Shown here: positions 39,244 to 63,520 of the stretch, one piece after another | How the letters are laid out: every line of letters begins with the position of its first letter | Numbering within the stretch: the first letter of the stretch is position 1 | Origin: Lepidodermella squamata | Taxonomy: Eukaryota; Animalia; Gastrotricha | NCBI GenBank assembly: GCA_047495785.1 | Contig: JBLDXI010000066.1 | Location: forward strand, 682,001-746,000 | Length of the DNA stretch: 64,000 bases | Direction of reading: 5' to 3' | The notes under the pieces: generated by a model | The model's input: the letters and a program-made list of their open reading frames with translations, nothing else | Database searches by the model: none | Told to the model about the DNA's origin: nothing | Position numbers and translations under genes: made by a program

Positions 39244-39982
39244 TATTTTTATAATGCGTAAAAAAAATTAAATTAAAATGAACGAAATTCAGTGCAAATA
39301 AAATTATTGTTTCAATCGTTTTTTTCTCCATCCAACGCCGCTGATCAAATAGAGTAATAATTTCCTTTTTTGTTTTCTTAGCCACGTCGTCTTAGGTGGC
39401 GCATGGAGGTAATAAAATTTCGCCTTGTTGTGTGTGTGCGCCAATTTTTTTTCCAATGCGCCACAATCACTGGGCGGATGCCAGCCTAATTATACCTTTT
39501 CAGGTCGCGACCTACTTAACGCCAGACGTGTAATCTGAGAGTGAAAATCGCACCTAAAATGGCATTGAATTCCTAACCCATAAATGCAAAAAAAATTAAG
39601 ACGGATTTTTTTTCTAATTTTTTTTCCATTTTATCGATTTTTTTCTCGAGTGCGTATTTTCACTTGATATGTGAATGATGATAATAAAAAGTGTCACTTG
39701 ATAGAATAAAATTCGATTATTCATATCTATAGTTTTATAGTTGATTGCCCGGACAAGAAAGAGGCCGCATCTAATAAATCTCAAAATTGAATTAAGTGGT
39801 GCATTAACGCGCGTGTGGGACACATCAAAGCAATAAAATAAAATCGATCAACCTCTTCAACGCTGAGATGATTGCTAAAATAAATTATTGGTCCTTCCAC
39901 TCAACAACCAAAAAAGCGAAGTGAATTTCGAAAAAAGTGGCTTCGAAATTTCAAATATTCTCGAATTTTCCTATAATTGAAA

Positions 39983-41080
39983 ATGATCGACATTTCGTTG
40001 CTTTTGATTTTTCTAAACTGTTCATCTTCGATCGCGAATGTCATTTTCAGTTGTTGGTGGGCTTTCGGTTATTTTGACGCGTCAACCTGCCTAAACGAGT
40101 GTTTCTTCAACACGAAACGCAACGCCCTCAAATTCTGGGCCTACCACCCGATTTATAACCCAGCTTCAGACAGCGCCTTGACCGAATGCAAAATACCTTG
40201 CCTCGACGCAGTTAAACCCACCTTAATGTCGAATTTCGCCGCAATTCTTCACCTATCAATCGTATTCGTAGTTTCGAGCAAATCGAAATTTCCTGAAAAA
40301 TCGGATAAAATGCTACGAAAATTCCTGAATATTACAGGAATAAGTCTGTTAGTCCTACAATTAGCCGCCTACGTCATGGCTAGAATTAACTGGACAGCCA
40401 ACGAAATTTCTGGAACTTTTGTCGAAAATTGGGTTCGAATTTTCCCGGATAAGGAACAGCCGATACTGGATATGGACGAAATTTTTCAAGCTGCTATGAT
40501 AACTACAACAATCGCGATAACATTTCACAGTCTAAGAGCTGTTGGGATTAATTCGAAGAAAAACGAACAAGACGCAGCCGTGAATCAACCGCAAAATCTC
40601 AAGTTTATTCTAAAACCTGAATTTTTACATAATTTATGCGCAGTTTTGACGTTGAAATTCTTTTTTTGCCTAATTTCAGCCGCGACTTGCATGGCATTAT
40701 CATTTGCCTGGTTTGTATCGCTTTACGGCTTGGTCGATCTTGGCCCTTTTACCCTAAATCTTTCATTGAGCAGGCAAATTTACAGTCGATTGGCGTTTTT
40801 TCTTGCGCATATGATGATTTTGAGTCTGGCATCGCCAATTTCGGTGTTTTACGCCGCCTTCTCGCAGGTTAGGTCAACGTTTTTGTTGTACGCCATCGAT
40901 TTTATTGTTCTGGCGTGTTTTACCGCCTATGTAATTATTGATCCGCTGTCGACTGGTGAGCAAATGATGTGCTACGACGCTGTGATGGGCGGTTTTAATT
41001 TGCTTATGCTTATCATCGATTTTGCGCTACATTCTTTTCCGGATATTCATCGCGGCAGCCGATCAATATTGGACTATTAA
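39983..41080 (+). CDS. Intronless ~8-TM protein, unnamed family, member A
   Basis: Hydrophobic segments; WWAFGYFDASTCLNEC, LASPIS..Y, DFALHSFP shared with paralogs. Confidence 0.85.
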   Translation: MIDISLLLIFLNCSSSIANVIFSCWWAFGYFDASTCLNECFFNTKRNALKFWAYHPIYNPASDSALTECKIPCLDAVKPTLMSNFAAILHLSIVFVVSSKSKFPEKSDKMLRKFLNITGISLLVLQLAAYVMARINWTANEISGTFVENWVRIFPDKEQPILDMDEIFQAAMITTTIAITFHSLRAVGINSKKNEQDAAVNQPQNLKFILKPEFLHNLCAVLTLKFFFCLISAATCMALSFAWFVSLYGLVDLGPFTLNLSLSRQIYSRLAFFLAHMMILSLASPISVFYAAFSQVRSTFLLYAIDFIVLACFTAYVIIDPLSTGEQMMCYDAVMGGFNLLMLIIDFALHSFPDIHRGSRSILDY

Positions 41081-42002
41081 CGATGAATAAATTTGCATTA
41101 TACACGTAGAAAATTCAAACAAAATGTTGTTCCATCTCTCAAACAGAAAATCCCAGAAAAACCACAGGGAACAATTAAGTGTCGATTCGACTTTGTTTCA
41201 TTTTTCGCTCTCCTCCAAAAAACGTCAAGAGAAATGGCTGTACGGCTGTATAGACCACTATAAATTTATTCAGGAGGACAAGAGCGCTCGGAAAAGTATT
41301 TTGACAGCATTTCTAGGCCTTATAACGGTTTAGAATTATATCTCATCGAAAATCACTAGGGTTTGGCGAATATTCTGACATCGGGAGATGTTGATGTCGC
41401 TTTCAAGATTCAAGATAATTGAACGATGAGTCGGACGATATTAAAAACAGGTTGATAGCCATGAGGGTTGTTGAGAAATTTGACTTTAAAGTTTACCATG
41501 CTAATTTCGAAAAAAGTTCGCCTGGGAAATTTGAGTTTTTATTGCATCAATTAACAATGTCCCACACAATAAATTCTAATATTTTTTGCGCTTTAGACCA
41601 TTATTAGGGTAATCTAACAAGGTGAGGAATTTCGCTAGATGTTCAAAAATTTTGGTTGAATCCAGCTAATGTCTCTTCAACAAGCTGAATAGATAGGCTT
41701 TTCAACAACACTTTGGGATTTCTCGTCTTTTAAGGAGGACGGGAGCCTCCTAGAGGTCGGAAAATTGAAATTTGAAACTGAGTAAGATCATTGGAAAATA
41801 CAGAAAATCCACCAAACCCCACTTTTCACTTGTAAACAGTCAAATTTAAAGAAATCATCAATATTTACTGCAAAATATTTCCATTATTACTGACAAATTG
41901 GTGCAGAAGGATGCAATCGCAGCGAAGTCGATTATTTCCAGAAAAAAGAGAAAAATTGCCATTAAAGCAAAGATCAGTTAGATATTCTCCTTGGCATCGG
42001 GT

Positions 42003-42335
42003 TTACATCTGAGGAAATTCTACGACGTCAAACGCATCAGTTATAACAATGCGTCGAATCTTCTGGTTAATCTGCTTAAGTTTCTTGCTCAGGAGACTGT
42101 TGAAGCCAGGCTGCTGCTGGTTGTTGCTGCTGAAATCCCTAGCAATTCGCGAGCGCATCGCCTTGAGGAAAATATTCAACCGAATCGCCGTGTCGATACT
42201 CAACGGTGTTTCTCCTTGTTGTTCGGGCTCATCGGCTTGAAGAACGTCGTCATTCAGATCTTGCAGAAACGCGTAAGAGGACGAGCAACAACTAATGAGG
42301 CTCGAAATCAAAAGGCAAGTCAGGAAAAGATGCAT
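42003..42335 (-). CDS. Secreted prepro-peptide (signal, acidic pro-region, basic amphipathic segment), 110 aa
   Basis: MHLFLTCLLISSLISCCSS; QDLNDDVLQADEPEQQ; RSRIAR; GFNSLLSKKLKQINQKIRRIV; conserved in paralog at 43866-44200. Confidence 0.7.
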   Translation of the reverse strand: MHLFLTCLLISSLISCCSSSYAFLQDLNDDVLQADEPEQQGETPLSIDTAIRLNIFLKAMRSRIARDFSSNNQQQPGFNSLLSKKLKQINQKIRRIVITDAFDVVEFPQM

Positions 42336-43865
42336 TTTATGGCAAAATACTTTCGATTCAGGATCAAGTTGCGAAAGAAATAGTAAGAAAAACTTCGAAA
42401 AGCGTAAGCGTGTACTAATTAGTGTCGTAATATTTGCCATGTTTATTGGCTGTTGGCTTGACATCATGTCCCAGGTGTTAAGTGAGAAGTGAGAGTCGCA
42501 CTGCTCAGATAGTTAGCAACGTTCACACTGATAAGCTGGATCGCGTCTCGAGGATGAATCAAAACTGACGTGACAAAGCATTTTGCGATTCATTTATGTC
42601 AAAATATATGAGGGATAGTGACGCTTACTCCTAAGGCTGAAGTAGCGAGAGGTCGCTTCATCGCAGCGAACTGCGATATCTCACAGTCATCCCTACATCC
42701 CTACAATTTGGGCAATAATTGAAGGCAATTCTTTAATATACACCCTGATTAATGCACTCATCATAGTCCGGGGTGACTCGCATGCGTCGACATTTTTGAA
42801 TATGATGATATTTATCTAATTTCAAATGCGACTTATTTAGGTGTCAGGTGACGGTTAGAACAATTCTATTATGATTGACTTCATATCTTTATCTGGTTAG
42901 TGTCTCGGAGTGCGACACCCCAGCACCCCTGTAATTCGCACCCTGTCCTTTACGCATTCGCGTCAATTTTACCGAAAAATAAGCAAATATAGCTAAGACC
43001 TTAGGTCGGTTGGGGTGCGCGTAAATCTTCCTCCCGGTAATGTTTCCTCAATAATAGTTAAGTTCGGCAGGCCAACACATCAAAAAACAGCAAAAAAAAC
43101 AGCAAAAAACCCACAGGGGACCCTTTGATTATGAATTTTGGGCCCGAAAATACCACCTAGTTCGAGGATCCTACTTCGCGCACTGCTCACTAGGTCACTC
43201 CGGGTTCACGAAGTCACTAGCCTTCAGTTGCGTCATCTTGGTTAGTCGATACATGCGGGGCAGTATTTGGTGACAGTGATTGTCTTCAACCTAACGGGCT
43301 TGAAAAATTCACTGAGCTGTAAACGATCTTTTTTTAATTGATGTTCATCTAAAGGGAGTTGCCCGTCAACTGTCAAAGGCGGACATGCTTTAACAAACTT
43401 GCTAAATTTATACCAAACAATAGTTCTGGCAACTTCTGGTACTCCACTGCTTTTTGTGTTATAATGGGGCTGATGCATGAGACTGATCCCCTTATTTGTG
43501 CCAACAGTCATTGTTGGCTGTGTTTTCACGATAAATAAATCAAACAGTTTTTTACTGGCCAAATTTTGTTTCAGAGAATCGCTCATCGATTGGCTCCGAG
43601 AGAATTGATCAGGGTCTTATTGGAATGGCGAAGTTATAAATGATAGCATTTGGAGGTTATATCCCCCAAAAAGCAGTTGTATGCCACAAATAATGCATGT
43701 TTTTATTTGTACTTGTTTGAGTTAAGTTAGTGCAGGTGGGAGGTGGGTACATGGTACATCAGTATTCCAGAAAAAAAGACAGCGGGTCAAAAAGTAAGTA
43801 ATGATATCACGAAAAGAGAAATTCTCTCTACATCAGTAACAATCCGCTTCGGAAGTACAATGCTG

Positions 43866-44200
43866 CTATTCAGGAATTTCAACTACGTCGAACGTCTCTG
43901 TTATAACAATGCGCCGAGTCTTCTGGTCTATCTGCCTGAGCTTCTTGCTCAGAATACCGTTGAAGCCGGGCTGCTGATTGTTGTTGAAATCACTTGCAAT
44001 TCGCGAGCGCATCAAATGCTCAATTTCGGTTGAATCGCTGAGATGTCGCGAAGCGATGTTCGCTCTTCAGACAGAGGCTGTTGTTGCTCGGGTTCATCGA
44101 CTTGAAGCACTTCGTCATTCAAATCCTGTAGAAAGGCGAACGAGGACAAGCAACGACTTGTGAGGCTTGAAATCAACAGGCAAGTCAAAGCAAAACGCAT
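43866..44200 (-). pseudogene. Frameshifted paralog of the prepro-peptide gene
   Basis: MRFALTCLLISS...QDLNDEVLQVDEPEQQ in one frame; MRSRIASDFNNNQQPGFNGILSKKLRQIDQKTRRIVITETFDVVEIPE* in another; upstream DNA (44345-44510) also matches 42500-42640. Confidence 0.7.
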
Positions 44201-44818
44201 TTTTCGAAATAAATTGTAAAATGAGGACCAAATAATTGAGAATGAAATCACAGTTGAAGTCGAAGGGGTCTATATAGTTTACTAATTAGGTAGTGTCGGA
44301 ATATAAGGTAGCAGTCATTTTTATGGTACAACCTTACATTTGAATTCACACTGTTCTATGTTATCAACGTCCACACCGATGTGCTGGATCGCGTCTCTGC
44401 AGGATGTATCAGCGCTGATGTGACAAGATTAAAGCATTTTTCGATTCGATTATGTTCCTATATTTCGTTTAAGGACTAATGACCCTTGTCCTACGATCGA
44501 GGCTTAAGTAGGCTGCAATACTAGGTGAAAGGACGCGGTGAATGTAAGTTTCATTACGTACTGCTCGAAAATTTGAGCGGCTTCAATCAAAGGCCAGCCT
44601 CCCCAATTACACTCTTACTTAAGGAGGGCGTGATTTTTGTGAGTGACAAAATTTATTTGATTTAAAAGCGCGACTTGATGTAATTTGAAAATCCCTAAAA
44701 TGTATGCATCAGCTGATATCGCGTCACAGTTCACTGAATTGTGTTAAAATTTGCCACATAACTGCACATTTATATATTTTTTTTAACCAAAGAAGATCTT
44801 CGCATTGTCAGTTATGAA

Positions 44819-45803
44819 ATGAATTGCAACACATATATCAGAAAATCCGTCTTCTTCGCAGGAGCGAAGGTGCTGCAATTCCTACATTTCAGCTCGGCAG
44901 TTTCGAACGCTCTTCTCGCCTTTTGGTGGGCCATCAACTTCTTCGACGCAACGTCATGCCTAAATGAATGCCATTGCAGAGAAGCAACCACCCCAGGCAT
45001 CGTCGCGATATGTTCAGCTATTCTGTATCTATCTCTTGTCTTCATCATTGAAAGCAGGCGAAATTGGGCCACAGAATGCAGAGAGCAGTATAGATTCCTT
45101 ATTGGCCTATATGCAACAGGCGCTTTGCTTCTAATTCCGATTATTCCCGCCCTGGTCATTTCACGTTACAAATGGATTAATGCGACTAGTAAACACGTTC
45201 CAGTCAACATTTTACCACGATGGCATCCGGACAATTTTCTATCGCTTGATAACATATTCCTGGCCACGATTGTGTCCTCAATCGCTTCAATCACGATTCA
45301 TCTCATTAGGGCGGTAATCACTTTGGATATGCAAAATCGCGAGATCGCATCGGAAACTGATTTCTTCATCTATAGGATTGATAAACTTCACAGCTTCAGA
45401 TCTCTGGCGATCTTAAAGTGTCTGCTGAGTTTCGTCCCGTCTGTAACCTGTATGATTTACGTTAAGAATAGTGTCATGTCAAAATTCGGCCTTCTCGATC
45501 GTGCTAGATGGCTTTACATTCAATCATATGCAAATACGGCTTTGTTCCACCGTTTCGCGTTTTTTCTAACGCATTCGGTCATATTCAGCTGGGCGTCTCC
45601 GGTTTCAGTCACGTATGAACGGCCGTTGCAGACGAAAACCGCTTTTGCTATGTTTTTGATCGATTCCTTCGGGCTAGCGGCCTTCTTGCTGTATGCGGTG
45701 CTTGAGCGTTGCCGTGTTGCTTCCCAGCTTATTGTACATGGTGCTAGGAGGACTTAATCTTGCAGTTTTATTCGTCGATTTTCTCCTCCATTCTTTCCCC
45801 TAA
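44819..45803 (+). CDS. ~8-TM family member B, frameshift near 45700-45730
   Basis: WWAINFFDATSCLNEC, WASPVSVTY; last helix LLYMVLGGLNLAVLFVDFLLHSFP* is in a shifted frame. Confidence 0.75.
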
Positions 45804-46122
45804 TCAGTTTGAAATTATCTCATTCCGTAATTTGCATTGAAAATAAAATATCTCACGAATGTACGGGAAGAGATTCCCTTTTTAGAAGTAGCTGGGGTTC
45901 AATTGTGCAAATTTGTAGACTGTATCGAATTTCTTAAATATGAGTAAAAATTTGGAAATCGATTGATTTGTTTGCCTTGAAGTGGGTAGCTGTCTACACA
46001 CATCTGAATCCGAGGCCACTCTTTTGGGGGTTTGGAGGGCTCTAACCAAATATTTGCTATTCAATCAAGCGCCACGCCGCAGAAGGTGATTTATTCATAC
46101 CGAACTTCTCTCAACTTCAGGA

Positions 46123-47413
46123 ATGAGGAAATTCTTAGAGTATATCCTTATTGGATTTGCTTTCCTAACTAGCGTAAGGAATGCTTCAAATAACCAAACC
46201 AAGGCTTTAATGGATGAGCTACAGAAAGAGTATATCTACAACTTTTGCCCGGTCGTTCTCTCGAAAAGTGTCCCGAGTGAGACTGTCATTCGCAACAACT
46301 TCACGCAAGCTCTCCGTGTTAAAGCTTCTGCTTACCTGTTCCGTTTTATTGAAATAAGCGACGTAGAGCAGCGATTGTCGCTGTTTCTATACTTCACCTT
46401 CCAATGGCCGTTTCCATGCCCGATTTATGAATGTAGCGAAATCGTCCATGATTCACCACTCTGTCAACTACCGAAAGATCGCGTGGAAAATTTGTACTTC
46501 TTGCTATCACCCGGCGAAATTTGGCACCCGTACCTAGCCCATATGAATGCGCACGAGATGCCGAGACCGTTCGAAAACGCAATCGATGGCGATATAACAT
46601 TCATTTTCCCTTTCTCAGCATCAGGGCCTCAAGCATATATTGGGATGTGCAGGCGGATAGATACATCCTGCCAGTCGTTTTCTTTCAAGAACTTCCCATT
46701 TGATACCCTGGAGTGCGAGATGAAGTTCGAGCCTGAGGAAAGCGTCGAATTTCTGTGGTATGATGTTGCCTTCTACGGCGTGGATCACTCGCTGAGTTCA
46801 AACCTAATAAGTGACACTGATGTTTGGGAACTCGCGTATCCTGACGATCTAGCAAAGACGTTCACTGGCGAGAGTCGAAATATCAGCGAATCCACCGGGG
46901 TTTTCTCTAGGATTGTCCTAACCAGTCGTTTTAGGCGCAAATACAACTACTACGTCGCTAGCATGATGATCCCGTCTTATGCTACATTTGTCCTCCAAAT
47001 CACATGCCTGCTGTTACCACCCAAGTTACCCGATAGGTAAATTTGAACTTCTCACCTTGTTTTTGGCTAAGATTTTACTTACCAGGCCTTCATTCGCTAT
47101 GACAGCTGTTCTAGCTAATTCTGTCCTACTTGCGATGGTTTTTTCAAGCATCCCTCCAACCTCAGAAACAGTCTATTTTGTGAATATGGTGATCATCAAA
47201 TTTATTGTTGGACTTGTAATAACAATGTACACTTTATTGACGGTCCCACTTGCTTGCTGACAGGCCAGTAAGTACAAAATCGTAATTTTTCGGTGGAAAA
47301 TCACTCGCATTCGTTTGGCTGATGCTCTCATCGCCTTGGCTACTGTTGTCATAGGATTTACTGCTGATGTTTACTATTTTTCCAGGCTGAGAAGTGAATT
47401 GAAAAGTGAATAA
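46123..47413 (+). CDS. Divergent Cys-loop (pentameric) ligand-gated ion channel subunit; exons 46123-47036, 47086-47413; in-frame TGA at 47258-47260
   Basis: Signal peptide; IWHP; CQSFSFKNFPFDTLEC; RRKYNYY pre-M1; IPPTSE M2-M3 loop; M4-like RIRLADALIALATVVIGFTADVYYF lies after the TGA. Confidence 0.85.
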
Positions 47414-47654
47414 AGCCGCTATCGACATGAACTCGTGACTGCAAAGGGGAGTTGGGCAGAAAGACAACACAAGCCCGATAACGGCAGTAATTCATCTCTA
47501 TTTCGGTTGATTAGCGCATGATTCACCACTTAGCTCGTTGGCTGATAAGAAGTTGTGAATAAGACTCTGCGGTATAAAAGCAGCCGCCACCACACCGCGA
47601 GTCATTATCTACTCAAACAAACAAACAAAATCCTTTTCAAAAGTCAAAAATCAC

Positions 47655-48928
47655 ATGGGTCTAAAATCGATTCAGCTGGTCCTTGACAAAGCCTCGGTCA
47701 AGCCGATCTACCAATCCAATGATGTGATCAGTGGCTCGTGCAACTACGTCATCAATGCCGAGCGGGGCCTATTCAACTGCAACACGCAGAACGAGCAGGA
47801 GCCGATTGTACTGGAAATCACGCTTCAGGGACTGTCGAAAGTTCATTGGACTGAAACTCGTACAACAACTGTTAGTACTGGGAAATCGACCATTACGACG
47901 ACTTATACGGTCTCTTACTCATCATCGCGAACTTTGGTTAATTTGGTGAGCAGGACCACTCTGAAGGACGAAAAACTCACCCCAGGGCAACATAGCATTC
48001 CCTTCCAGTTCAAACTTCCGGAGAAGGGGTAAGTCAAGCGAAAAAACGACCTACCAAATTTTAATCACAGCTCTCAATTCACAGGCTATGCACGTCCTTT
48101 GAAGGAGCTCATGGCTTTATTCGATATTCGATCACTGCCCAACCGAAAGCATCATGGTTTGGATCCTTTTTCGTTCCTAAATCGACCTTACCTTTGAAGG
48201 TCGTCCAACGCTTGTTTACTAGCAACGCGGCCCAGTTGAAACCTGTCACAGGTACGAATTCGAAGTCTGTCTGCTGCCTGTTTCTTCAATCCGGCCCGCT
48301 AACTGTCGATGCCGAGTGCGATAGGGCTGCTTGTTATTGCCTGGGCGATGTCGCTCATCTCACGGCTGAATTCAGCAACATGTCCTCTCGAAAGGTTAAG
48401 CCTTACGTGAAACTCGTCCAAACCTGCGTTTTCACAGCCGATTGCGGGAAAATGAGGTCGACAACGAAGAGCTTCGATTTACAACCTGTGAACCAGAATG
48501 ACATGGAAAGTATTACTGCCTCGCAGTTATTGAAGGGAGCTTCGTCGAACTGGAATCAGATGGCTTTCAAACTCCCAACAGTTTCCCCCTCGATTGCTAG
48601 TGGCAATATTTCGGTGGTTTATCACTTCGAGGTGGCCATGTCAATCCCTTGGGCCTTTAACCTTCGCGTCAATTTGCCGATTTTGATGGGAACAGTTCCG
48701 TGTAAGAAACAGTCTGAAGTTAAGCCTCGAAAGGTTGCTGATAAGGCTGGCGAGATGGATTCCCTTGTTAAGAGCAACACTTACAATGACGAGGCGCCAC
48801 CTAGCTATTTTGCGACATTTTTGAATCAACAAATTGCAATTCTTCCGGAAAACTTTGATGAAGATTCACAGGAGAAAAATGGCAAGAAAAATGGAGCAAA
48901 AGGTAATGGGAAAGTCAAAGCTAAATAA
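47655..48928 (+). CDS. Alpha-arrestin (arrestin domain-containing protein); exons 47655-48028, 48085-48928
   Basis: G.SKVHWTE, LTPGQHSIPFQFKLP, TSFEGAHGFIRY, LPILMGTVP, C-terminal PPSY (PPxY). Confidence 0.92.
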
Positions 48929-49411
48929 TATTCTATGGTGTCATATAATATGCAAATTACTATTTTGATTAATAAAATGCGAATATATATTACTTGTTGA
49001 ATTTTGACTTTTGTGAGGAAGGTTTTACCTGCGATTCTCTATTCCCAGAGAAAAACGTGCGATGGGTGCTTCGTGCTACTACGATGCTCCCTCACTGAGG
49101 AATGCGATAGGGTTCAAAGAATTCTAATAAGGATTTTTGGCCTTTCTTCGGGTTATCCCCGGTCAAATGTTAGATAATGGATACGAAATACCTATCACTG
49201 ACGAAAGATACCGGAACCCTACAAAAATCCCCTTACAATTTTTGTTCCCTTTAATCTCAAACAAAGTGGTCAAAGATTCAAATATTCCCAGGCAACAAAT
49301 TTCCTAGAGTTCTAGAAATAAATTCAATTTTCATTGATTTTTCGCTTTCCCCGTCGCGCTAATCTGCTAAAAAGCCATATTTATACAGGACATACAATAA
49401 AAAATTGGGTA

Positions 49412-50485
49412 ATGAAAATGTTGGGCTGTGCAAAATTCTTCGATATCCTACACTGCCTAGCAGCAACAGCCAGCGTTGCATTCACATGCTGGTGGGCATT
49501 TGGTTACTTCGACGCATCAACCTGCCTAAATGAATGCCACCACCACGTTAAGCACCTGCGAGTTTCTTCCGAAAAAGGGAACTACACTAGCACTGTCGAA
49601 AAATGCACTGCGCCATGCATCGAGGCCATCCGACCTATGATCATCGCAGTTTTCGTCAATTTCACCTACTTAGCCATAGTTTTCATTTCTTTCAACAAGG
49701 AGAAGCATTCTGAGATCGGCGGTCGAATATTCCGCAATTTGATAATGACGCTGGGGTTCTGTATTTTCTGGGCCGGACCAACTGTTATGGTAATCTCTCG
49801 GCGTAGATGGATCGAGGAGAATAGGCCGTCGATGCTGGTCGAACGCTGGTCGCATGTCTTCGCAAACCGGCAAGTACCAGTTCTGGACATGCAAGAAATT
49901 TACGAAAATAACTTAATGGCATCTGTAACCACAATATCCGTCCACATTCTGCGGGGTGTTATCATTTTAATCGAAAGCTTCAAATATTCTGAAAACAAAA
50001 CTGATACAGCTTTCATTTACAAACGAACAAATCACCAAACTTTTTGCTTTGTATTACTGATGAGGCTTGCTCTTTGTTTAACCGCCCTGTTTACCTGTAT
50101 GATATTAGCATCAGCTTGGTTTTTGTCATTGTACTTTACGGAAAGTCTTGGCCGCATTGCTTTAGATTCATCATTGAGTAGTCGAATTTACGTGAGGCTA
50201 TCGTTCTTTTTGACTCATTTGATGGTTATCTGTATAGCATCCCCTGTCTCGGCCTCATATGACCGCGCTTCTCGTGCTCATCTAGCATTTTTAGCCTATT
50301 TTATCGATCTCCTAGTTTTCATTGCATTCTTAGCTTACATTGTGAAAGAGCCTCTACCAGACGTTAGGTTGAGCTTTATTTACGACTTCTCATTGATTAG
50401 CATTAATGTAGTGGTTGTTGTTCTAGATTTTCACTTGAGGGCGTTTCCAAAGTTCAGTTGCAAAAATGAAACTGAAGATTATTGA
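49412..50485 (+). CDS. ~8-TM family member C
   Basis: WWAFGYFDASTCLNEC, IASPVSASY, DFHLRAFP. Confidence 0.85.
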   Translation: MKMLGCAKFFDILHCLAATASVAFTCWWAFGYFDASTCLNECHHHVKHLRVSSEKGNYTSTVEKCTAPCIEAIRPMIIAVFVNFTYLAIVFISFNKEKHSEIGGRIFRNLIMTLGFCIFWAGPTVMVISRRRWIEENRPSMLVERWSHVFANRQVPVLDMQEIYENNLMASVTTISVHILRGVIILIESFKYSENKTDTAFIYKRTNHQTFCFVLLMRLALCLTALFTCMILASAWFLSLYFTESLGRIALDSSLSSRIYVRLSFFLTHLMVICIASPVSASYDRASRAHLAFLAYFIDLLVFIAFLAYIVKEPLPDVRLSFIYDFSLISINVVVVVLDFHLRAFPKFSCKNETEDY

Positions 50486-50562
50486 TGCCATCAAAAAATC
50501 TCATTTCAAATCTATAAAAGTGCCAATTCCCTGGGGACACGTCATGTATTATGCCAAATGCA

Positions 50563-50870
50563 AAGAATCGAATTCAATGCTATTAGAAAAATCGGGCAAT
50601 GGGTTTTCTCATCTTCGCCTCACCATTATACGGCTGCGAGTTAGGGTTTCGCTAACTATGGGACATCTTCAGACCCGGTCGACAGGCAGAATCCTCCGAG
50701 ACGTGGCAAATCGCTTCGACCGCTGGCATTTTGGGAGAAATTAACGAGGTTGAACTCATCTATTCTCATGAAGCTTACAGAGTCCATCACATTGTCTATT
50801 TTTCAATGTTCATAAATAATGGTGTTACTTGTTTTGCGATTCGTAAGAGAATCTATGTTATAAGTAGATA
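50563..50870 (+). pseudogene. Deleted remnant of ~8-TM member D
   Basis: gaatcgaattcaatgctatta-aaaaatcggg-aatggg and tcttcagaccc match 53372-53530, with internal deletions. Confidence 0.7.
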
Positions 50871-51342
50871 TAAATAGCGTTATTCTGAGACATATTAGCG
50901 ATTTGGTGATGAGAACGTTGTGAGATTGAAACTCTCAACTGAAACTCATCATTCCACATTTCGCCAAGGGATCATCACTCAAATCAGACGTATCAGACCG
51001 CTCAGTCTGAGATTTGAGCCCAAATCAGACAAAGATCGCTAATAGAAGCATGCGCCAACAACACGACTGATAACTCTCGGACAGAGATAATGTGTATAAA
51101 TCAGCATTTTTCTGTAACCACGCAGTCAACAGATGCATCTCAGTTTGATCTTCCGGCAATCTAGCGGCAGACTACGGAAATAACTTCAGAAATTAACACC
51201 ATTGAACACCCTTTTCCGCTCAATCGTTGCCTCCAAATCAGCATGAACTGGAACGGAAGACCATCCGCGCATATAAATTCCAGTGAAATCGTTATCAATA
51301 TCGTAGGAGAAATTATTTTTCAGTCGAATACATTTGAACGCG

Positions 51343-52565
51343 ATGAACAAATCCAAGGAGAGTTTGCCGCGAGCTGAGCTGGTTAACAGCGGATGGGTTA
51401 GAGTCGACCTTCCACAGCAAGGCTACGGCCACCCGAAGGAGTACTACATCGGCTATACACACGACCTATCATATCGCGGCCTGCCTGATCGTCTCATTTA
51501 TCCAATCATTGTGGGGCTTTTGTTGGTTGCACTGATAGCAGCTTGCATAGTCAATATATTTATCTACGTACGACGTGGGGTGAAGCGAGACTTCCTGATG
51601 CTAGCAACCATCGCCCACATTCGCAGCATTTCATTCACAACTAGCATGCTCATTTTATACATCGGGCCAGTTGCAACTGGCGGGTGGGATTGGCCTGATT
51701 GGACCTGCAAATCTTCTTTCGTTGGGGGTTGGATCGCTGGAATTTACGGGACCAACATCGATTCTTTGATATCGTACGAACGGCGACTTTGCTTGTCCTC
51801 AAAATCGATCAATTATCGAGCGAATACCCTAAAAATTCTGGCTATAGCTTTCGCTCAGTTGACTTATTGCACCTTGATGAGTTTAGCTTTCCTAGTTTGG
51901 CCATTCAATACAGCCAAAGTCGTGCGGTTGATTGTTTCAGGCGTGAATGATGATAAACCATTCGCCATCTGCACACAATGGGACTACAACTTCATCAACG
52001 ATTTCGACACCTCGTTTTTGATGATTGTGTATTACGCATCAAACTATAGCTCTGCGATTCCCTTTCTGGCCTACAACTACTGGAAGGCGTTCAAATCCAT
52101 CGCGAAATTGAAGGCAAGTGAAAGCCACTTCAGCACACAAGCCATTACATTGCAGTCAACAATGTCTGGCAACTTGAAAGCTATCCCGCGATGGCAGCGT
52201 CGAGAAATCTACCTGATGAAGATGTCCATACTAATGTTTGTCATTTTTGTCATCACTTTCTTGCCCGCATTTTGGTCCAGGTATGTGTCGATTTTCTGAA
52301 AACTCAAAATTAACCTAACAATTCATGTCATTGTTTTAGCTTCGCTATAGCAACTTGGAGACTCGGTTCGTTTGTTGTGGAGATAGCTTGGTTCCGCAAA
52401 TTCGCAATATGCGTTGCAATCTCCGGCTCGCTTGTATCCACCATTTTGCAATCTCTCTCACCGTCGTATCTCGAAAAACGATTTGACGCAATTGGCGATT
52501 TGTTTTCACGCATGAAAATTAGGATTTCAAAAGCATGTCGAAGCAACGCTGTTGCCTATGCTTGA
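51343..52565 (+). CDS. Rhodopsin-like (class A) GPCR 1; exons 51343-52280, 52340-52565
   Basis: GGWDWPDWTCK, ISYERR (DRY equivalent), ECL2 Cys, FVITFLP; 7 hydrophobic segments. Confidence 0.9.
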
Positions 52566-53187
52566 GGCTTGAAGTCCCGCCTGATGTTAACCGCCTGAGT
52601 TGGCAGTTTAGCGAGTGAACTTCCTAGTCAAATGTTGTGGAGTTGTAGTTCTATTGAGTTTCCTGGGATAGTTATTTATTCGCGAAAATTACTTTTCACA
52701 ATAGTCTAGCTCTTTGTCGGCCAGGGTGCGATCTTCGATCTCCGAGCTCCCGGGGATGGAAAAATTTTTTTGTTGTTTTTGTCAAAAGACTAATAACCGG
52801 TAATAACCGAGCGAAGCAAGAAAATTTTGGAGATTTTCCACTATAACACGCCCCAGAACCTTCCAAATATAACAAAACAGTGGGATAAATTCTCATTTTG
52901 TTGTCTGGCCCGGCCGAGCTGGGGGGATGATCCCCCCATCCCCCCTGAAAGTCGCACACTGTTTGTCGGTTTCAACCTTGATGTGTCACATGGCAACTAG
53001 TTAAATGCTAATTTTAATAGTTGGTATTTTTGGAATAAAACATGGTTCTCTCTCTTGGTCGAAATTCTTCATTCCTTATGTTTTACCATTTCGTACGTAA
53101 TATTAAATGAATCATTAATTATCTTTTTATTACGGCTCGCGAGGATGAAACATCTGTGTTCACGTTAAGTAGTTAAAAATGTCGAAA

Positions 53188-53270
53188 TCTGTTAATGTTG
53201 TAGTCGTATTCATAGATTTTCGCTTGAGCGCGTTTTCCAAGTTCAGCTGCATAAATGACACTCAAGATCA
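53188..53270 (+). pseudogene. 3' fragment of ~8-TM member C
   Basis: gttaatgttgtagtcgtattcatagattttcgcttgagcgcgttttccaagttcagctgc matches 50402-50480. Confidence 0.7.
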
Positions 53271-53384
53271 ATTTCTTTTGCGATCAAAAAATGGCCTACT
53301 CTTGGGATAGTCAAGTCTAATAAAAATGCGAATTCCCAGGGGAAATCTCATGTATTTGTATTATGCCAATAAGAATCGAATTCA

Positions 53385-54365
53385 ATGCTATTAAAAAATC
53401 GGGAAATGGGTTTCCTCATCTTTGGCTTATCATTCTACCTACGTTTCTTGCATTGCACTACAGCGGCAACAAACTTGGTTCTTCTCTATCTATGGAATAT
53501 CTTCAGACCCGATCGACAGACAGCATCCTCCGAAATTTGGTTATTCGCTTCAGCCGCTGGAATTCTTTACACATCTCTAGTTTTCGCTCTATCAAGCTGC
53601 GTCGATAACCAAGAGAGGAAATACCGACAATTTCAACTGATTTTGTACATAATTGGAGCCGTTCTACTAGCAGCAATGATCGTTGCTCCTGTAATCATAC
53701 GGAATGAAGCAATCACGGATGAAATAACTGAAATTGAACGGATTAATTATCCTGATTCAAGAGCTTACAGAACCCATCGCGACATTTATTTTTCAATTTT
53801 GACAAACGGACTGACTTCTTTTGCGATTCATTGCATTAGAGGGGCAAGAATCGTTGCCTACAAACATCAATCGCCCGAAATTGTTGACCCACGAGTTCTA
53901 CCGAGGCGGAAAATGTTCGTTTACCGTCCGAAAATCTTACAAACTTTCTCCTCAGTTGTTACTGGTAGATTGGTCGTCTGCTTCGCTGCTTCACTTACCT
54001 GTTTCTACGCTTCAGCGGCTGTTTTGAATTCGCCTTACACGGTTACCTTTAACTTACAACGCAACTCCAATCCGAAATACATTTTGCGCTTAGCCGGTTG
54101 GTGCCTCCATTTGATGATTATTTCATTCGCATCACCTCTTGCGGAGACTTATGAAAGACTGCATCAGGTATATGTTACTTTCGTGCTGTATGGGATCGAT
54201 ATCATCTTGATAATTGGTCTTGTGACTTGTTGCTACCTCAATCAAATTAGTTCGACTCGGCAAATCTTAGACTTGTCCCTTGCCGCAATCAATGCAGTCA
54301 CCGTGCTTTGTGATTTCTCGCTCCACTCATTTTCGGAGATTTTCGATAGCATGAATCACAATTAA
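53385..54365 (+). CDS. ~8-TM family member D (lacks the Cys-rich first loop)
   Basis: FLHC, AIHCIRG, FVYRP, LHLMIISFASPLAETYER, DFSLHSF. Confidence 0.85.
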   Translation: MLLKNREMGFLIFGLSFYLRFLHCTTAATNLVLLYLWNIFRPDRQTASSEIWLFASAAGILYTSLVFALSSCVDNQERKYRQFQLILYIIGAVLLAAMIVAPVIIRNEAITDEITEIERINYPDSRAYRTHRDIYFSILTNGLTSFAIHCIRGARIVAYKHQSPEIVDPRVLPRRKMFVYRPKILQTFSSVVTGRLVVCFAASLTCFYASAAVLNSPYTVTFNLQRNSNPKYILRLAGWCLHLMIISFASPLAETYERLHQVYVTFVLYGIDIILIIGLVTCCYLNQISSTRQILDLSLAAINAVTVLCDFSLHSFSEIFDSMNHN

Positions 54366-54870
54366 AAATTTGCCAAATTTCACATCGGAATCGATCTTTG
54401 AAGGACTGATACGGGTTTTAGTTACCTAGATCTATTGTCTAAACGCGATAATGAGAAAATTTTAAATTCAGGGAAGGAGTGAAACTCACATATTTTAAAC
54501 AAATTTAGAGAGCTACAGACTGAAGATTAGTGCTGGATACCTGGATTTGGGGGAAAACGGGTCACACCTTTAACGCGAAATAATTTGTTTGAGGATGAAT
54601 GAACCGAGTGTTTACAATTTCTTTCTTTCGGCACCGGATATATCTTGCAACTGTGAGCTCACAGCGATACTTGCAATCAATCTCGCTAAGCGTAGCAGAG
54701 CATGCACAGGCGCACTTGTTTCACGAAGCGGCAAAGAAAATAAACAAAACAAGAACAGGAAGAGGCGAAAAAGCAAAGCAAATGGAGCGTAAGTAACTAC
54801 TACCTCAAAACACACACACAAAGCATTTCCTTCCGATTTTGATTGAATACAGCGAATCACCTGCAGGAAA

Positions 54871-56088
54871 ATGAGCCCAGAACGAGTTCCGATGTACCGA
54901 AGCAACAAACTAGCGACTACAGTTAAAATTTTCAAGTCGATCCTCGCGATTCTTCAACTTATCTTCATCTGGTGGGCGGCGTTTGGCTATTACCGAAATT
55001 CAACCTGTCTGAAGAAATGCATGGCCGAATTCGAACCAGCCCTCGAAAACCCGACGTGGCAAGCTTACGACGAAATGAAGAACGAGAGCGATGACAATGA
55101 AACGCTGGCAAAAATCGAAAGAGTGCTGCGAAAAACTATTGGTGAACCCGGTATCGAGACGCTAATAACTGTTTCCGAACAAAAAACTGTTGAAAAAATC
55201 GAAAATCTACGTGAAGAATGCCGCGTTAATTGCGCCTCGACTATTCTACCTTTGAGATACTCTCTAATAACTAGTTTGGTCCATTTGTGCATTACTTTCG
55301 GATTTTTAGGGAAAACTCAATATTTCCATCATCTTGAATACATTTGGATAGGACTGTTTTTCGCTATCGATGGGCTACTTTTAATCATATCGATGTCCTC
55401 CCTTTTCATTGTCTCTGTAAACAGTTCTGAAGACTATAAAGGTCCCTTCGATTTCATTAGCGAAGTACAATGTGGTCTGCCAACGTTTGCTGTACCATTT
55501 TTAGTTCAAATTGCGTTCTTGCTAACCTCATTTTCGTTATTTATCCACGTGATTCAAGCTATTAATTTAAAGCCGATTCCCCACGATGTTCCGCCGATCA
55601 TTTCACAAAATCCTGTCTATCTGTTTCAATGCTTCCAATTTCACGGCTTTGTCTCTGGTTTGAAACTGATCAACTGCGCTTTGCCAATTTTGAGCTGCTC
55701 TGTTTCTTCGATCATGGTATTTCAAGCTCTTTACGTCCACGGCAGATTGTCGTTCGATCCCAAGTTATGGGCTGATATTTATGTCAATTTTAGCCTGGCT
55801 GTTTTCTTTCTATGGCACGCTGCATTTTGCTCGGCTATCCTGCCTCATACGACCTATTACCTGAGTAAGGTGGAGGTGAAAATAACTCTTGCTTTATACG
55901 TGCTGGAAACATTCTTGTTCGCGAATTGGCTCGGCTTTTTTGTGCTGATACGACTGACTGAGGACAGGTGGTTCACATTGGCAAATTTAGCCATGGTTAA
56001 TTTCGGCTTTTGGGTAATCGACTTTTCTTTGCATGCTTTCCCTGGCGAGTGCTGTTCTAAATGGGTTGGATGTAATCGGAGTGAGTGA
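54871..56088 (+). CDS. ~8-TM family member E (long first loop)
   Basis: WWAAFGYYRNSTCLKKC...CRVNC, FIHVIQA, DFSLHAFP. Confidence 0.85.
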   Translation: MSPERVPMYRSNKLATTVKIFKSILAILQLIFIWWAAFGYYRNSTCLKKCMAEFEPALENPTWQAYDEMKNESDDNETLAKIERVLRKTIGEPGIETLITVSEQKTVEKIENLREECRVNCASTILPLRYSLITSLVHLCITFGFLGKTQYFHHLEYIWIGLFFAIDGLLLIISMSSLFIVSVNSSEDYKGPFDFISEVQCGLPTFAVPFLVQIAFLLTSFSLFIHVIQAINLKPIPHDVPPIISQNPVYLFQCFQFHGFVSGLKLINCALPILSCSVSSIMVFQALYVHGRLSFDPKLWADIYVNFSLAVFFLWHAAFCSAILPHTTYYLSKVEVKITLALYVLETFLFANWLGFFVLIRLTEDRWFTLANLAMVNFGFWVIDFSLHAFPGECCSKWVGCNRSE

Positions 56089-57114: not shown

Positions 57115-58341
57115 ATGAACAAGTCTCAAGAGAGTATTCCTCGGGCTGAGATGGTTAACAGTGGTTGGGTAAGAGTCGACCTCCCACAGCAAGGCTACGG
57201 CCACCCAAAGGAGTACTACATCGGCTTTACTCACGATTTGTCATCTCGTGGCCTGGCAGATCGTATCATATGTCCGATTATAGTTGCGCTTTTGCTGGTA
57301 GCGCTGGTAGTGGCTTGCATTGTCAATCTAAAGATGTTAAGGCGACGTGGGGTGAAGCCGGACTTTTTGATGCTGGCAACAATTTCACACATACGCAACA
57401 TTTCCTTCACTTTAGTCATGCTGATTTTTTACATTGGGTCCATTGAAACCGGAGGATGGGAATGGCCAGATTGGACCTGCAAAGCTCTTTTCGTATTCGG
57501 CTGGATAACAGGCATTTACGGAACAAACATCGATTCTTTGATATCTTACGAACGGCGATTGTGCTTGACCTCGAAATCGATCCATTATCGATCAAACGCT
57601 CTTAAAATTCTGGCTATAGCGCTTATTCAGTTGATAATTTGTACTTTGATGAGTTTAGCCTTTCTAGTTTGGCCATTCAATACGGCGACGGTTAAAACTT
57701 TGATTGTCATTGGCGTGAATGATGAACAACCAATTGCATTCTGCACACAATGGGACTACAACATGATCAACGATTTCGACACTTCGTTTTTGATGATTGT
57801 GTATTACGGATGTAATTACAGCTTCGCTATTCCCTTTCTCGCCTACAACTATTTGAAGGCGTTCAAGTCGATTGAGAAGTTGCAAAACAGTGACAGTCAT
57901 TACAGTAGCGGACAAACCGCTTCATTGCAGACAACAAAATCTGGCCACCTCAAGGCTGTTCCACGGTGGCAGCGTCGAGAAATTTACCTCATGAAAGTAT
58001 CTGTGCTGATGTTTACCATTTTCGTCATCACTTTCTTTCCAGCATTTTGGTCCGCGTATGTAGATTCAATTTTCTGGAATTTCAAATTTCACTTTTATTT
58101 TTGTCACAGATTAGCCACTGCAACTTGGAGACTCGGTGGGTATGTAGTGGAGGTAGGGTGGGTGCGCAAATTCACAATGTGCTTCGCCATGACCGGTTCG
58201 CTTGTATCTACGATTGTGCAAGCTCTCCCGCCGTCGTATCTCCAAAAACGATTTGATAGTGTCGGAAATTTGTATTCACGCATGCAAAGCGTTATTTCAA
58301 AAGCGTTTCATCGCAATGTTGTGTCCGTAGATCTCACCTAG
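57115..58341 (+). CDS. Rhodopsin-like GPCR 2; intron 58056-58109
   Basis: Close paralog of GPCR 1; the 54 nt intron is in frame without a stop. Confidence 0.9.
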   Translation: MNKSQESIPRAEMVNSGWVRVDLPQQGYGHPKEYYIGFTHDLSSRGLADRIICPIIVALLLVALVVACIVNLKMLRRRGVKPDFLMLATISHIRNISFTLVMLIFYIGSIETGGWEWPDWTCKALFVFGWITGIYGTNIDSLISYERRLCLTSKSIHYRSNALKILAIALIQLIICTLMSLAFLVWPFNTATVKTLIVIGVNDEQPIAFCTQWDYNMINDFDTSFLMIVYYGCNYSFAIPFLAYNYLKAFKSIEKLQNSDSHYSSGQTASLQTTKSGHLKAVPRWQRREIYLMKVSVLMFTIFVITFFPAFWSAYVDSIFWNFKFHFYFCHRLATATWRLGGYVVEVGWVRKFTMCFAMTGSLVSTIVQALPPSYLQKRFDSVGNLYSRMQSVISKAFHRNVVSVDLT

Positions 58342-59487: not shown

Positions 59488-60712
59488 ATGAACACGTCTC
59501 AAGAGAATATTCCCCGAGCTGAGGTGGTTAACAGTGGTTGGGTGAGAGTCGACCTCCCACAGCATGGCTACGGCCACCGGAAGGAGTACTACATCGGCTT
59601 TACTCACGATTTGTCATCTCGTGGCCTGGCAGATCGTATCATATGTCCGATTATAGTTGCGCTTTTGCTGGTAGCGCTGGTGGTGGCTTGCATAGTTAAT
59701 CTAAAGATGTTAAGGCGACGTGGGGTGAAGCGTGAATTTTTGATGCTAGCGACCATTTCGCACATACGCAACATTTTCTTCACTGTAGTCATGCTGATTT
59801 TTTACATTGGGTCAATTGAAACAGGCGGCTGGGAATGGCCAGATTGGACCTGCAAAGCTCTTTTCGTATTCGGCTGGGTCACAGGCATTTACGGAACAAA
59901 CATCGACTCTCTGATATCGTACGAACGGCGATTGTGCTTAACCTCGAAATCGATCCATTATCGATCGAACACCTTCAAAATCCTGGCTATAGCACTCGTT
60001 CAGCTAATCTCATGCACTTTGATGAGTTTGGCATTCATAGTTTGGCCGTTCGACACGATAACGGTGAAAACCTTAATTGTTACCGGGGTGAATGACGACA
60101 GACCAATCGCCTTTTGCACGCAGTGGGATTTCAACTTCATCAACGATTTCGACACCTCATTTTTGATGATTGTGTACTATGCATCAAATTACAGCTTCGC
60201 TATTCCCTTTCTCGCCTACAATTATTGGAAGGCGTTCAAATCAATCGCGAGGTTGCAAGCAAACGAAAGCCAGAAAAGCACACAAGACATTACATTGCAG
60301 ACGACGAGATCTGGCCACGTAAAAGCTGTTCCACGGTGGCAGCGTCGAGAAATTTACCTAATGAAAGTATCTGTGCTGATGTTTGCCATTTTCGTCATCA
60401 CTTTTTTCCCCGCATTCTGGTCCGCGTATGTCGATATTCCGGTATTTTTATATTTCGCTTAACTATTGTATTTATTCCAGATTAGCTACAGCAACTTGGA
60501 GACTCGGTGGGTATGTCGTGGAGGTAGGCTGGGTGCGCAAATTCACAATGTGCTTCGCCATGACCGGTTCGCTCGTATCAACGATTTTGCAGTCTCTCCC
60601 GCCGTCATTTCTCGAAAAACGTTTCGACGCTATCGAAGGCTTGTATTCGCGCTGGCACCGCAGCAAATCGCACCGGAGCAACGTTATTTCAACTGTTTTA
60701 AGTAATGCTTGA
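59488..60712 (+). CDS. Rhodopsin-like GPCR 3; intron 60426-60480
   Basis: Close paralog of GPCR 2. Confidence 0.9.
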
Positions 60713-61202
60713 TGTTGCATAGATATCTTAAATTATTCATTTTTAGGTTTCTTTGATTGTTAGATTGATGTTGGTTGCCTCTTAATTATTGATAGAAGTT
60801 ATTATCATGAAAAGTGAAGGATGAATAAAAATATGTTCTATTTGTTAAGTCTTCTGCGCTTATCTGTTGAATTATTCCAATTAATCGAATTTCTCATGTT
60901 GTTTACAATTATTTGAGCAATGTTTGAACTGTACTGCTTTTTTATAAATAATATAATCTATTCGTAATTCATCACTTAGCATTCGGCCCCCTTGGAAGAC
61001 ATTTTAGTTTTTTCCACTATTAGTTAAATGCCTTCTAGGTGCTGTGCGGTTTTGCTTTCCTAGTTAGGAAATCCTGCTCGAGCAACGAATCGAAAGACAG
61101 CCCCGCATAATTGATCTGCGCAAAAAGCTTCCGGTGACATGATGACATTCGGGGATATCGCTGACTTTGCTAGAGGCAAGATTCAGTCGAATCGATTCAA
61201 AC

Positions 61203-61307
61203 GCGATCAACAGGTCCAGGGAAAATATTTCGTGTGCTGAATATGTCAACACGGGCTGGGTGAGAATCGACCTTCCATAACAGGGCCGCCGAAAGGAGTA
61301 CTTTATC
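61203..61307 (+). pseudogene. 5' remnant of a fifth GPCR copy
   Basis: Start codon mutated (gcgATCaac), VNTGWVRIDLP* then RRKEYFI; matches the GPCR N-termini. Confidence 0.7.
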
Positions 61308-62293: not shown

Positions 62294-63520
62294 ATGAACA
62301 GGTCACTGGAAAGTATTCCGATAGCCGAGAAGGTTAACAGTGCTTGGTTAAGGGTCGACCTCCCACAGCAAGGCTACGGCCACCCAAAAGAGTACTTTGT
62401 GGGGTATGCGAACGACCTATCAGCTCGCGGCCTGTCTGATCGTCTCATATTTCCGATCATAGTGGCCATTTTGTTATTAGCGCTGACAGTAGCTTGTATA
62501 ATCAACCTAATTATCTACGTACGACGTGGCGTTAAACGGGACTTTTTGATGCTAGCAACCATCTCCCATATACGCAGCATTCTCTTCGCAATTGACATAA
62601 ACATTTTATACATTGGGCCACTTGCAACTGGCGGGTGGGACTGGCCTGATTGGACCTGCAAAGCTGTTTTCGTTGGAGGTTGGATGACAGGCATTTACGG
62701 CACGAACATCGATTCTTTGATATCTTACGAACGGCGATTGTGCTTATCCTCGAAATCAATTACCTATCGATCAAACACCTTGAAAATTCTGGCTATAGCT
62801 TTCGCTCAGTTGATTTCTTGCACTTTAATGAGTTTGGCCTTCCTGGTTTGGCCATTCAATACAGCTGCAGTAAAAACTTTGATTGTTACAGGTGTAAATG
62901 ATGATAAACCATTCGCCATCTGTACGCAATGGGACTACAACTTCGTCAACGATTTCGACACTTCATTCTTGACGATTGTTTATTACGCATCAAATTACAG
63001 CTTCGCGATTCCATTTCTGGCTTACAACTACTGGAAAGCGTTCAAATCCATCGCGAGTTTGAAAGCAAGTGAAAGCCAATGCAGCACGCAAGCCATTACA
63101 TTGCAAACAACAAAATCTGGAAACGTCAAAGCAATTCCGCGATGGCAGCGTCGCGAAATCTACCTGATGAAGATGTCAGTGCTGATGTTTGTCATTTTCA
63201 TCATCACCTTCTTACCCGCATTCTGGTCAACGTAAGTCGTTTCGTTTTTTTTGGAAACGTTCAGATTAATATTTATGTTTATTTTACGATTCAGTTTCGC
63301 TCAAGCAACTTGGAGACTCGGTGCGTATGTTGTGGAGGTAGCTTGGGTGCGTAAAGTCTCCATTTGCATCATGATTTTCGGCTCGCTTGTATCAGCTATT
63401 TTGCAATCTCTCTCGCCGTCATATCTCGAAAAGCGATTCGACAGCATAGAAAGCTTGTTTTCGCGCTTTCAAAGCAGCATTTCTAAAGCGTTTCAGAGGA
63501 AAGTTGCCCCCACAGCTTGA
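62294..63520 (+). CDS. Rhodopsin-like GPCR 4; intron ~63232-63294
   Basis: Close paralog of GPCR 1. Confidence 0.9.

Follow-up and report, generated by a model that had tools for sequence, protein, structure and literature searches.

A 64,000-nucleotide stretch of the genome of the gastrotrich Lepidodermella squamata (contig JBLDXI010000066.1, positions 682,001 to 746,000 of the forward strand; hereafter the window) contains five paralogous genes, A to E, that constitute a real, selectively maintained and lineage-restricted family of multi-pass membrane proteins of ~330–400 residues. The family grows and shrinks by tandem duplication and gene loss. Its members are open reading frames (ORFs) of 312–405 codons on the + strand, which align end to end and lie between 39.9 and 56.1 kb of the window:

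Gene A, 39983..41080, + strand: intact; 365 amino acids from the ATG; eight hydrophobic segments; first loop of 52 residues with twin CX3C
Gene B, 44819..45803, + strand: frameshifted; the ATG-start ORF (44819–45757) stops after helix 7, and helix 8 lies in another frame
Gene C, 49412..50485, + strand: intact; 357 amino acids from the ATG; nearest to A (34% identity); first loop of 46 residues with twin CX3C
Gene D, 53385..54365, + strand: intact; 326 amino acids; first loop of only 13 residues; loop cysteines and WW-GYF motif lost
Gene E, 54871..56088, + strand: intact; 405 amino acids; most divergent (17–23% identity); first loop of 90 residues with twin CX3C and three N-x-S/T sequons

Pairwise amino acid identity among the five ranges from 17 to 35%, with A and C the closest pair and E the most distant member. 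Searching the window with each protein (tblastn) and with a hidden Markov model (HMM) of the family on six-frame stop-to-stop pieces identified these five genes and two fragments only. The first-pass annotation of this DNA had proposed five same-strand paralogous ORFs at these positions, and all five were found and aligned over their whole length. Gene B, however, is not intact but carries a 1-nucleotide frameshift, and the two decayed fragments had been missed.

Coding constraint, membrane segments and conserved motifs

At the GC content of the window (~42%), a stop codon is expected roughly every 17 codons, and by our arithmetic an open run of at least 326 codons has a chance of ~2 × 10−9 per position. 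Because their lengths far exceed what chance would produce, the ORFs are not accidental. The paralogues are saturated at synonymous sites, which makes the ratio of non-synonymous to synonymous substitution rates (dN/dS) unusable. We instead compared nucleotide identity by codon position, using protein-guided alignments. Identity was highest at position 2 (0.44–0.64), intermediate at position 1 (0.30–0.49) and lowest at position 3 (0.26–0.39) in all ten pairs, with position 3 near random. The family proteins have therefore been under long-term constraint. The hexamer AATAAA is found 3–39 nucleotides downstream of the stop codon in A, B and E (6 nucleotides in A; 39 nucleotides past the shifted-frame stop in B).

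To define the local splice style, we used four neighbouring genes of a second family with seven apparent transmembrane (7TM) segments. Each of these has one intron of 54–63 nucleotides that begins with GTATGT or GTAAGT and ends in CAG or TAG preceded by a T-rich tract; the intron sequence is poorly conserved, whereas the exons on either side are well conserved. No donor/acceptor pair of this style, 40–160 nucleotides apart, occurs inside any of the five ORFs. Their coding regions are therefore intron-free, and hidden short introns in A to E were rejected since there were no candidate splice pairs. This agrees with the earlier description of the genes as intronless in an intron-rich genome. Upstream of gene E (~54785–54866), a GTAAGT ~85 nucleotides ahead of the start codon and a CTGCAG 5 nucleotides before it were seen by eye; they could bound an intron of local size in the 5′ untranslated region.

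A 19-residue Kyte-Doolittle scan delineated eight hydrophobic segments in each of the intact genes (A, C, D and E) and seven in the ORF of B, whose eighth is encoded past the frameshift in another frame. The eight segments counted in the first-pass annotation thus hold for the four intact genes. The termini are short, with 7–33 residues ahead of helix 1 and 10–15 past helix 8, and there is no soluble domain.

Seven alignment columns are invariant: F97, G121, H184, C238, H278, P287 and Y292 (numbered along the 367-codon ORF starting at 39977). The two invariant histidines lie in helix 4 (H184) and helix 6 (H278). Conserved blocks begin with WW-x-x-GYF-x4-C-x3-C after helix 1, at its outer end, in A, B, C and E. 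They continue with ILYLS-x-VF (helix 2), V-I-S-R (helix 3, outer end), S-I-x-I-H-x-I-R-A-V (helix 4, inner end) and T-C-M (helix 5). Helix 6 and the following loop carry FFL-x-H-x-M-I-x-S-x-A-S-P-x-S-x-x-Y, and T-F-x-L-Y-x-I-D marks the start of helix 7, with Glu as the acidic residue in E. The end of helix 8 reads DF-x-L-(H/R)-x-F(P) in A, C, D and E, and in B beyond the frameshift. All motifs listed in the earlier annotation (WW..GYF, intramembrane His, ASP.S..Y and DFxL(H/R)xF) were recovered, with two exceptions in single members: the WW-GYF block is degenerate in D, and of the ASP-x-S-x-x-Y stretch past helix 6, complete in A to D, E keeps the P and Y only.

We infer that both the N- and C-termini are cytoplasmic, so that helices 2–8 would cross the membrane like those of a 7TM receptor, starting outside and ending inside. 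Lys and Arg make up 15% of the proposed inner loops versus 11% of the outer ones, N-x-S/T sequons number eight in the proposed outer loops versus three in the inner, and the four paired cysteines all fall within the proposed outer loop 1. This distribution of charges, sequons and cysteines fits the proposed topology without proving it. A cleaved leader followed by seven helices would orient helices 2–8 identically. A plain signal peptide is disfavoured for helix 1, because the helix contains conserved polar residues (L-H-C...N).

Several conserved polar residues would lie towards the cytoplasmic side in this topology. Helix 4 has H184 and R187 (His-x-x-Arg) at its inner end, and helix 6 has H278 midway along and Ser-Pro...Tyr at its inner end; D308 (Asp/Glu) is ~9 residues into helix 7 counted from inside, and D348 and H352 (Asp-x-x-x-His/Arg) are at the inner end of helix 8. 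Together, these residues of helices 4, 6, 7 and 8 may form a network in the inner half of the membrane, a cluster that could equally act in signal switching, in guiding ions or metals, or in catalysis.

The first loop, between helices 1 and 2, lengthens from 13 residues (D) through 21 (B), 46 (C) and 52 (A) to 90 (E). Its description as hypervariable stands, since length varies widely with D the shortest and E the longest; the extremes, previously given as absent and ~75 residues, are now 13 and 90. In A, C and E, one C-x3-C pair directly follows helix 1 and a second lies ~8 residues ahead of helix 2. The loop of B has the first pair and a single Cys, and that of D has no Cys. Loop 1 is predicted to be extracellular, and in A, C and E two disulfides between the twin CX3C pairs would tie together the outward-projecting parts of helices 1 and 2, giving a stapled hairpin. 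Its tip would be the variable insert of ~27 to ~70 residues, and D would have lost the hairpin. In small Tim proteins, two C-x3-C pairs join two antiparallel helices by two disulfides. The likeness to these proteins, two C-x3-C pairs with a spacer, is a motif analogy only and not homology: the pairs of the present family flank a membrane-anchored loop of very variable length, which would be extracellular and not mitochondrial.

Birth-and-death evolution at the locus

The frameshift in gene B is located near 45735–45745, ahead of the last helix, and the ORF ends 12 codons on. The coding sequence for helix 8 and the DF-x-L-H-x-FP end runs on without a break in another frame up to the stop at 45801–45803, and its product is 65% identical to A. 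An intron was rejected as an explanation for the frame change, as the homologous residues are contiguous in the DNA. The frameshift is not an assembly error either, because an independent Logan contig of public reads, covering 43159–45900 at a depth of 62, shows no difference. Judging from the sequence of B, its break must be recent.

Further traces of gene turnover were found between genes C and D:

Decayed fragment, 50587..50841, + strand: like the 5′ part of D, interrupted by stops and shortened by internal deletions (tblastn with D, three-frame translation and nucleotide match)
Decayed fragment, 53173..53307, + strand: like the 3′ end of C, covering helix 8 and the tail, with 27 amino acids at 67% identity
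Duplicated segment, copy 1, 50403..50842, + strand: 3′ end of C, spacer and 5′ part of a D-like gene (blastn)
Duplicated segment, copy 2, 53192..53829, + strand (extending into D): 70–74% nucleotide identity to copy 1 (blastn)

The two copies of the segment align by blastn in two parts, with 69.6% identity over 378 nucleotides between 50403–50730 and 53192–53564, and 74% between 50772–50842 and 53762–53829. The order along the locus is C, D-remnant, a 7TM gene (G1), C-remnant, D, E and another 7TM gene (G2). As we read it, this order shows an old tandem duplication, in which an ancestral unit with one C-type, one D-type and one 7TM gene was probably copied, followed by reciprocal loss that left one intact copy of each 8-TM type. 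Such a history implies that the 8-TM and 7TM families duplicated together, and the 8-TM genes are indeed interleaved and co-duplicated with the four 7TM copies. The frameshifted B, the two decayed fragments and the duplicated segment bear out the birth-and-death evolution that had been suggested for these genes. As the history of duplication and loss is legible from the locus, it is useful for studying the origin of new membrane protein families.

Searches for relatives

None of our searches returned even the proteins of the window itself, so that "no relative" here means none outside this genome and its nearest kin; A to E may already stand in public annotation as hypothetical proteins. Searching the five proteins against Pfam-A (hmmscan, E up to 1) gave only noise, on D. 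A word-seeded search of 5.8 billion protein clusters, both with C alone and with the five-sequence alignment, detected no relative. A full HMMER profile scan of 1.84 billion representatives resulted in two matches only, P0001 (E-value of 8 × 10−33) and P0002 (E-value of 2 × 10−5). Both are unrelated and were rejected, being translated tandem or satellite repeats that sum 26 and 7 weak matches to the WW/helix motif; they illustrate how repeats produce false positives in profile searches. PDB sequences gave nothing meaningful at E up to 10, whether the query was the profile or one of the single proteins A, C, D and E. The best scores on ESM Atlas features, 0.83 (C, all clusters) and 0.77 (A, named clusters), were within the range of shuffled sequences. 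Scans with back-translated patterns found no relative in metagenome contigs (C) or viral contigs (A), the second species of the same sequencing study had nothing at ≥80% likeness, and no description of such a family was found in the literature.

AlphaFold2, run on the five-sequence alignment, gave no usable model, with a predicted local distance difference test (pLDDT) of 49.8 and a predicted template modelling score (pTM) of 0.43 with A as the first sequence, and values of 45.9 and 0.34 with D first. The models consist of eight long helices whose packing is untrustworthy. With this low-confidence model as the query, VIA-align against 48,161 PDB chains returned generic helical bundles or noise only, Foldseek found nothing below an E-value of 0.3 in the PDB, and the ESM Atlas shape search reached template modelling scores (TM-scores) of ≤0.37 by query. 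That five divergent sequences yield no usable AlphaFold2 model shows a current limit of structure prediction.

As far as sequence, profile, language-model-feature and fold searches reach, the family is new, as the first-pass annotation had proposed, and the searches run gave no confident full-length match to a characterised family. It represents a clean case of multi-pass membrane proteins that have no detectable relatives yet are kept by selection. The additional suggestion that the proteins are two fused four-helix units is not supported by sequence. The halves are unlike each other (hhalign of columns 31–262 versus 276–440, probability 0.2%, E-value of 0.31), and a double unit of the MS4A/tetraspanin type was rejected because the halves lack detectable similarity. 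The low-confidence model does split into two four-helix bundles, which carries no weight at a pLDDT of 50.

Candidate functions and the genomic neighbourhood

We tentatively favour lineage-specific, environment-facing surface receptors of the chemoreceptor kind, a possible rather than a probable reading that draws on evolutionary behaviour, neighbourhood and the lack of a housekeeping relative. It is suggested by the fast turnover of the family (17–35% identity between neighbours, a frameshifted copy, fragments and a duplicated segment), which resembles that of sensory and environment-facing families, and by the fact that no housekeeping family matches. It is also suggested by the content of the cluster, which holds the co-duplicated 7TM family and two gene pieces that are probably exons of multi-exon genes:

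Cys-loop receptor gene piece, 46123..47040, + strand: between B and C; part of the ligand-binding domain and first membrane helix (Pfam E-value of 8 × 10−6)
Arrestin-domain gene piece, 48194..48928, + strand: between B and C; arrestin C-terminal domain (E-value of 1 × 10−15)

Single-exon chemoreceptor arrays (vertebrate odorant, T2R and V1R receptors, and nematode serpentine receptors) resemble the family in their intron-free coding regions, same-strand clusters and low identity between neighbours. They also share pseudogenes or fragments among intact copies, very short termini and seven consecutive helices running from outside to inside. Unlike these receptors, the family has eight segments, not seven, and no motif or Pfam match of G-protein-coupled receptors (GPCRs). 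If A to E are receptors, the outer hairpin and the outer helix ends would meet the ligand, and the inner polar network would relay the change to a cytoplasmic partner or gate an ion path.

Several observations weigh against a role as receptors. The X-box motif of ciliated neurons is absent from the window, and the five genes share no upstream 8-mers. The two invariant intramembrane His, the invariant intramembrane Cys and the two acidic residues suit a metal, proton or catalytic site equally. Pair identity is 34% in the inner halves of the helices versus 25% in the outer halves (p = 0.15), and, loop-1 indels aside, conservation in the outer loops is not below that in the inner loops. An asymmetry between a variable outside and a conserved inside was not significant, and we dropped it. 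The cytoplasmic tail of 10–15 residues is short for a GPCR, the AlphaFold2 models are unusable, and a search of public sequencing runs with 7 kb of sequence returned DNA contigs only.

In its boldest form, the receptor reading would make the family a previously unknown class of animal sensory receptors that has a fold of its own and no relationship to GPCRs, insect-type 7TM channels, ionotropic glutamate-type receptors, Cys-loop receptors and other known classes. The stapled variable hairpin would be the ligand-facing part and the inner-leaflet His/Asp network the gate. We consider this form distinctly improbable. If the proteins are receptors or channels, a new family would be added to the short list of animal chemosensory receptor classes, and it would offer a handle on how micro-invertebrates sense their surroundings, an almost unexplored matter.

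An ion channel or a transporter of small solutes, metals or protons is an unlikely alternative. The inner-leaflet His/Asp network would line the path of an oligomeric channel or a carrier, possibly with a sensory ionotropic role. This would suit the invariant His of helices 4 and 6, the acidic residue of helix 7 and the Asp-x-x-x-His on one face of helix 8, as well as the very short termini without a soluble signalling domain. However, no sequence or profile match to any such family was found, and fold matches to MFS, ferroportin and TMEM175 were at noise level (TM-score ≤0.37, Foldseek E-value >0.3). Moreover, C has Arg in place of the His in the helix-8 pair, and a His two residues earlier. 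Two families of this kind that had been put forward for comparison do not fit. Insect-type 7TM ion channels (Gr/Or and GR-like) share a cytoplasmic N-terminus, a length of ~350–400 residues, extreme divergence, tandem arrays and a strongest motif in the last helix. The present family differs from them in its eight segments, which would put the C-terminus inside, in the absence of TYxxxxxQF from A to E, and in having neither a 7tm_6 or 7tm_7 match nor an OR/GR chain among the fold matches. Otopetrins have twelve helices, arranged as two halves of six, against the eight segments found here in 326–405 residues, and there was no Pfam match.

The same residues might instead belong to an intramembrane metal- or heme-dependent enzyme, such as a lipid-modifying hydrolase or reductase, with an active site of invariant His/His/Asp/Asp near the cytoplasmic leaflet; we regard this as quite unlikely. 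Among the few invariant positions are two His and one Cys within the membrane, close to acidic residues, and the zinc sites of PAQR/ceramidase-type (CREST) proteins sit at a similar depth in the membrane. CREST hydrolases (PAQR, alkaline ceramidase, Per1 and TMEM8) have seven helices and the zinc-site motifs S-x3-H, D and H-x3-H. The family does have (S/T/A)-x3-H in helix 4, but no H-x3-H in its conserved core and no Pfam or PDB match, and membership of this group was rejected. Cytochrome b561, also named for comparison, and heme proteins of the ferric reductase type need four conserved His on four helices, making two bis-His heme sites; the family has only two invariant His (helices 4 and 6), and again there was no Pfam or PDB match. 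The CREST/PAQR motifs and the four His of cytochrome b561 are thus not present as such, and no match appeared in Pfam or the PDB even at E = 1–10. In addition, most membrane enzymes are shared between phyla, and they are rarely found in tandem arrays that decay quickly.

A highly derived GPCR, which we hold to be just as improbable as an enzyme, would consist of an extra N-terminal helix or uncleaved signal anchor, a variable ectodomain and a 7TM core. Wntless/GPR177 has such a layout: helix 1 is followed by a luminal domain of ~200 residues and a GPCR-like bundle of seven helices, in a protein that is single-copy and conserved across animals. The family resembles it in its eight helices, in both termini being cytoplasmic (as proposed here) and in having the main outward element between helices 1 and 2. 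Yet the loop of the family is 13–90 residues long and dispensable, as in D, and there is no sequence similarity. Compared with GPCRs more generally, helices 2–8 of the family would have the same orientation, and the family's conserved polar residues lie at the inner ends of the helices that would be counterparts of TM3, TM5 and TM7, a positional analogy only. The family has eight segments and lacks the E/DRY that marks the cytoplasmic end of TM3, and the loop that would supply the disulfide between TM3 and extracellular loop 2 contains no Cys. None of the five proteins matched the GPCR Pfam families (7tm_1 to 7tm_5 and nematode Sr*) at E up to 1. A motif scan upheld the reported absence of GPCR and gustatory-receptor motifs: NPxxY does not occur in A to E, and [DE]R[YFHW] is matched only by ERW (gene C) and DRW (gene E), each located in an outer loop. 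The fold match to Ste2 was under the tool's stated noise level for helical bundles, and helix 1, with its conserved polar residues, is not a plain signal peptide. A relationship between the 8-TM family and the neighbouring 7TM family was rejected at an hhalign probability of 0.2%.

A role in organising membranes or as an accessory subunit, in the manner of claudin/PMP22, tetraspanin or MS4A proteins, seems very unlikely; the family might then act as partner or chaperone to the adjacent 7TM genes with which it was co-duplicated. Claudin/PMP22/LHFPL proteins share with the family a Trp motif followed by two cysteines in the first outer loop, immediately behind helix 1, and have loops of similar length among the first four helices. 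The PROSITE pattern of claudins is G-L-W-x2-C-x7-9-C, whereas the family has G-Y-F-x4-C-x3-C spacing, a motif that is lost in D, and four extra helices. With eight segments, different motif spacing and no Pfam match, the claudin comparison raised in the first-pass annotation gave no support. Finally, decaying or functionless ORFs, for instance remnants of mobile elements, are barely credible, for although one copy is frameshifted, two are fragments and high-copy repeats lie between A and B, four ORFs of 326–405 codons remain open at 17–35% identity with a coding substitution pattern, and no viral or mobile-element relative was found.

The neighbouring 7TM genes form a second orphan family, with no Pfam match and no relative among the 5.8 billion clustered proteins. 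Its four paralogous members, at 51343–52565, 57115–58341, 59488–60712 and 62294–63520 on the + strand, are 74–87% identical, and a fifth, short fragment lies near 61200–61307. Each has one phase-2 intron after the sixth helix (52281–52339, 58056–58109, 60426–60480 and 63232–63294, respectively). Three of the four seemed truncated or frameshifted as plain ORFs, and they are intact when spliced (389–393 amino acids).

Between genes A and B, the regions 41300–41900 and 42900–43300 are high-copy interspersed repeats, marked by a climb in summed contig depth from ~60 to several thousand and by numerous short, divergent contigs. On the - strand, ORF pieces between 23267 and 36871 carry WSC, DUF4215, Sushi, C-type lectin and fibrinogen-C domains, and are probably parts of at least one secreted or surface protein encoded by several exons.

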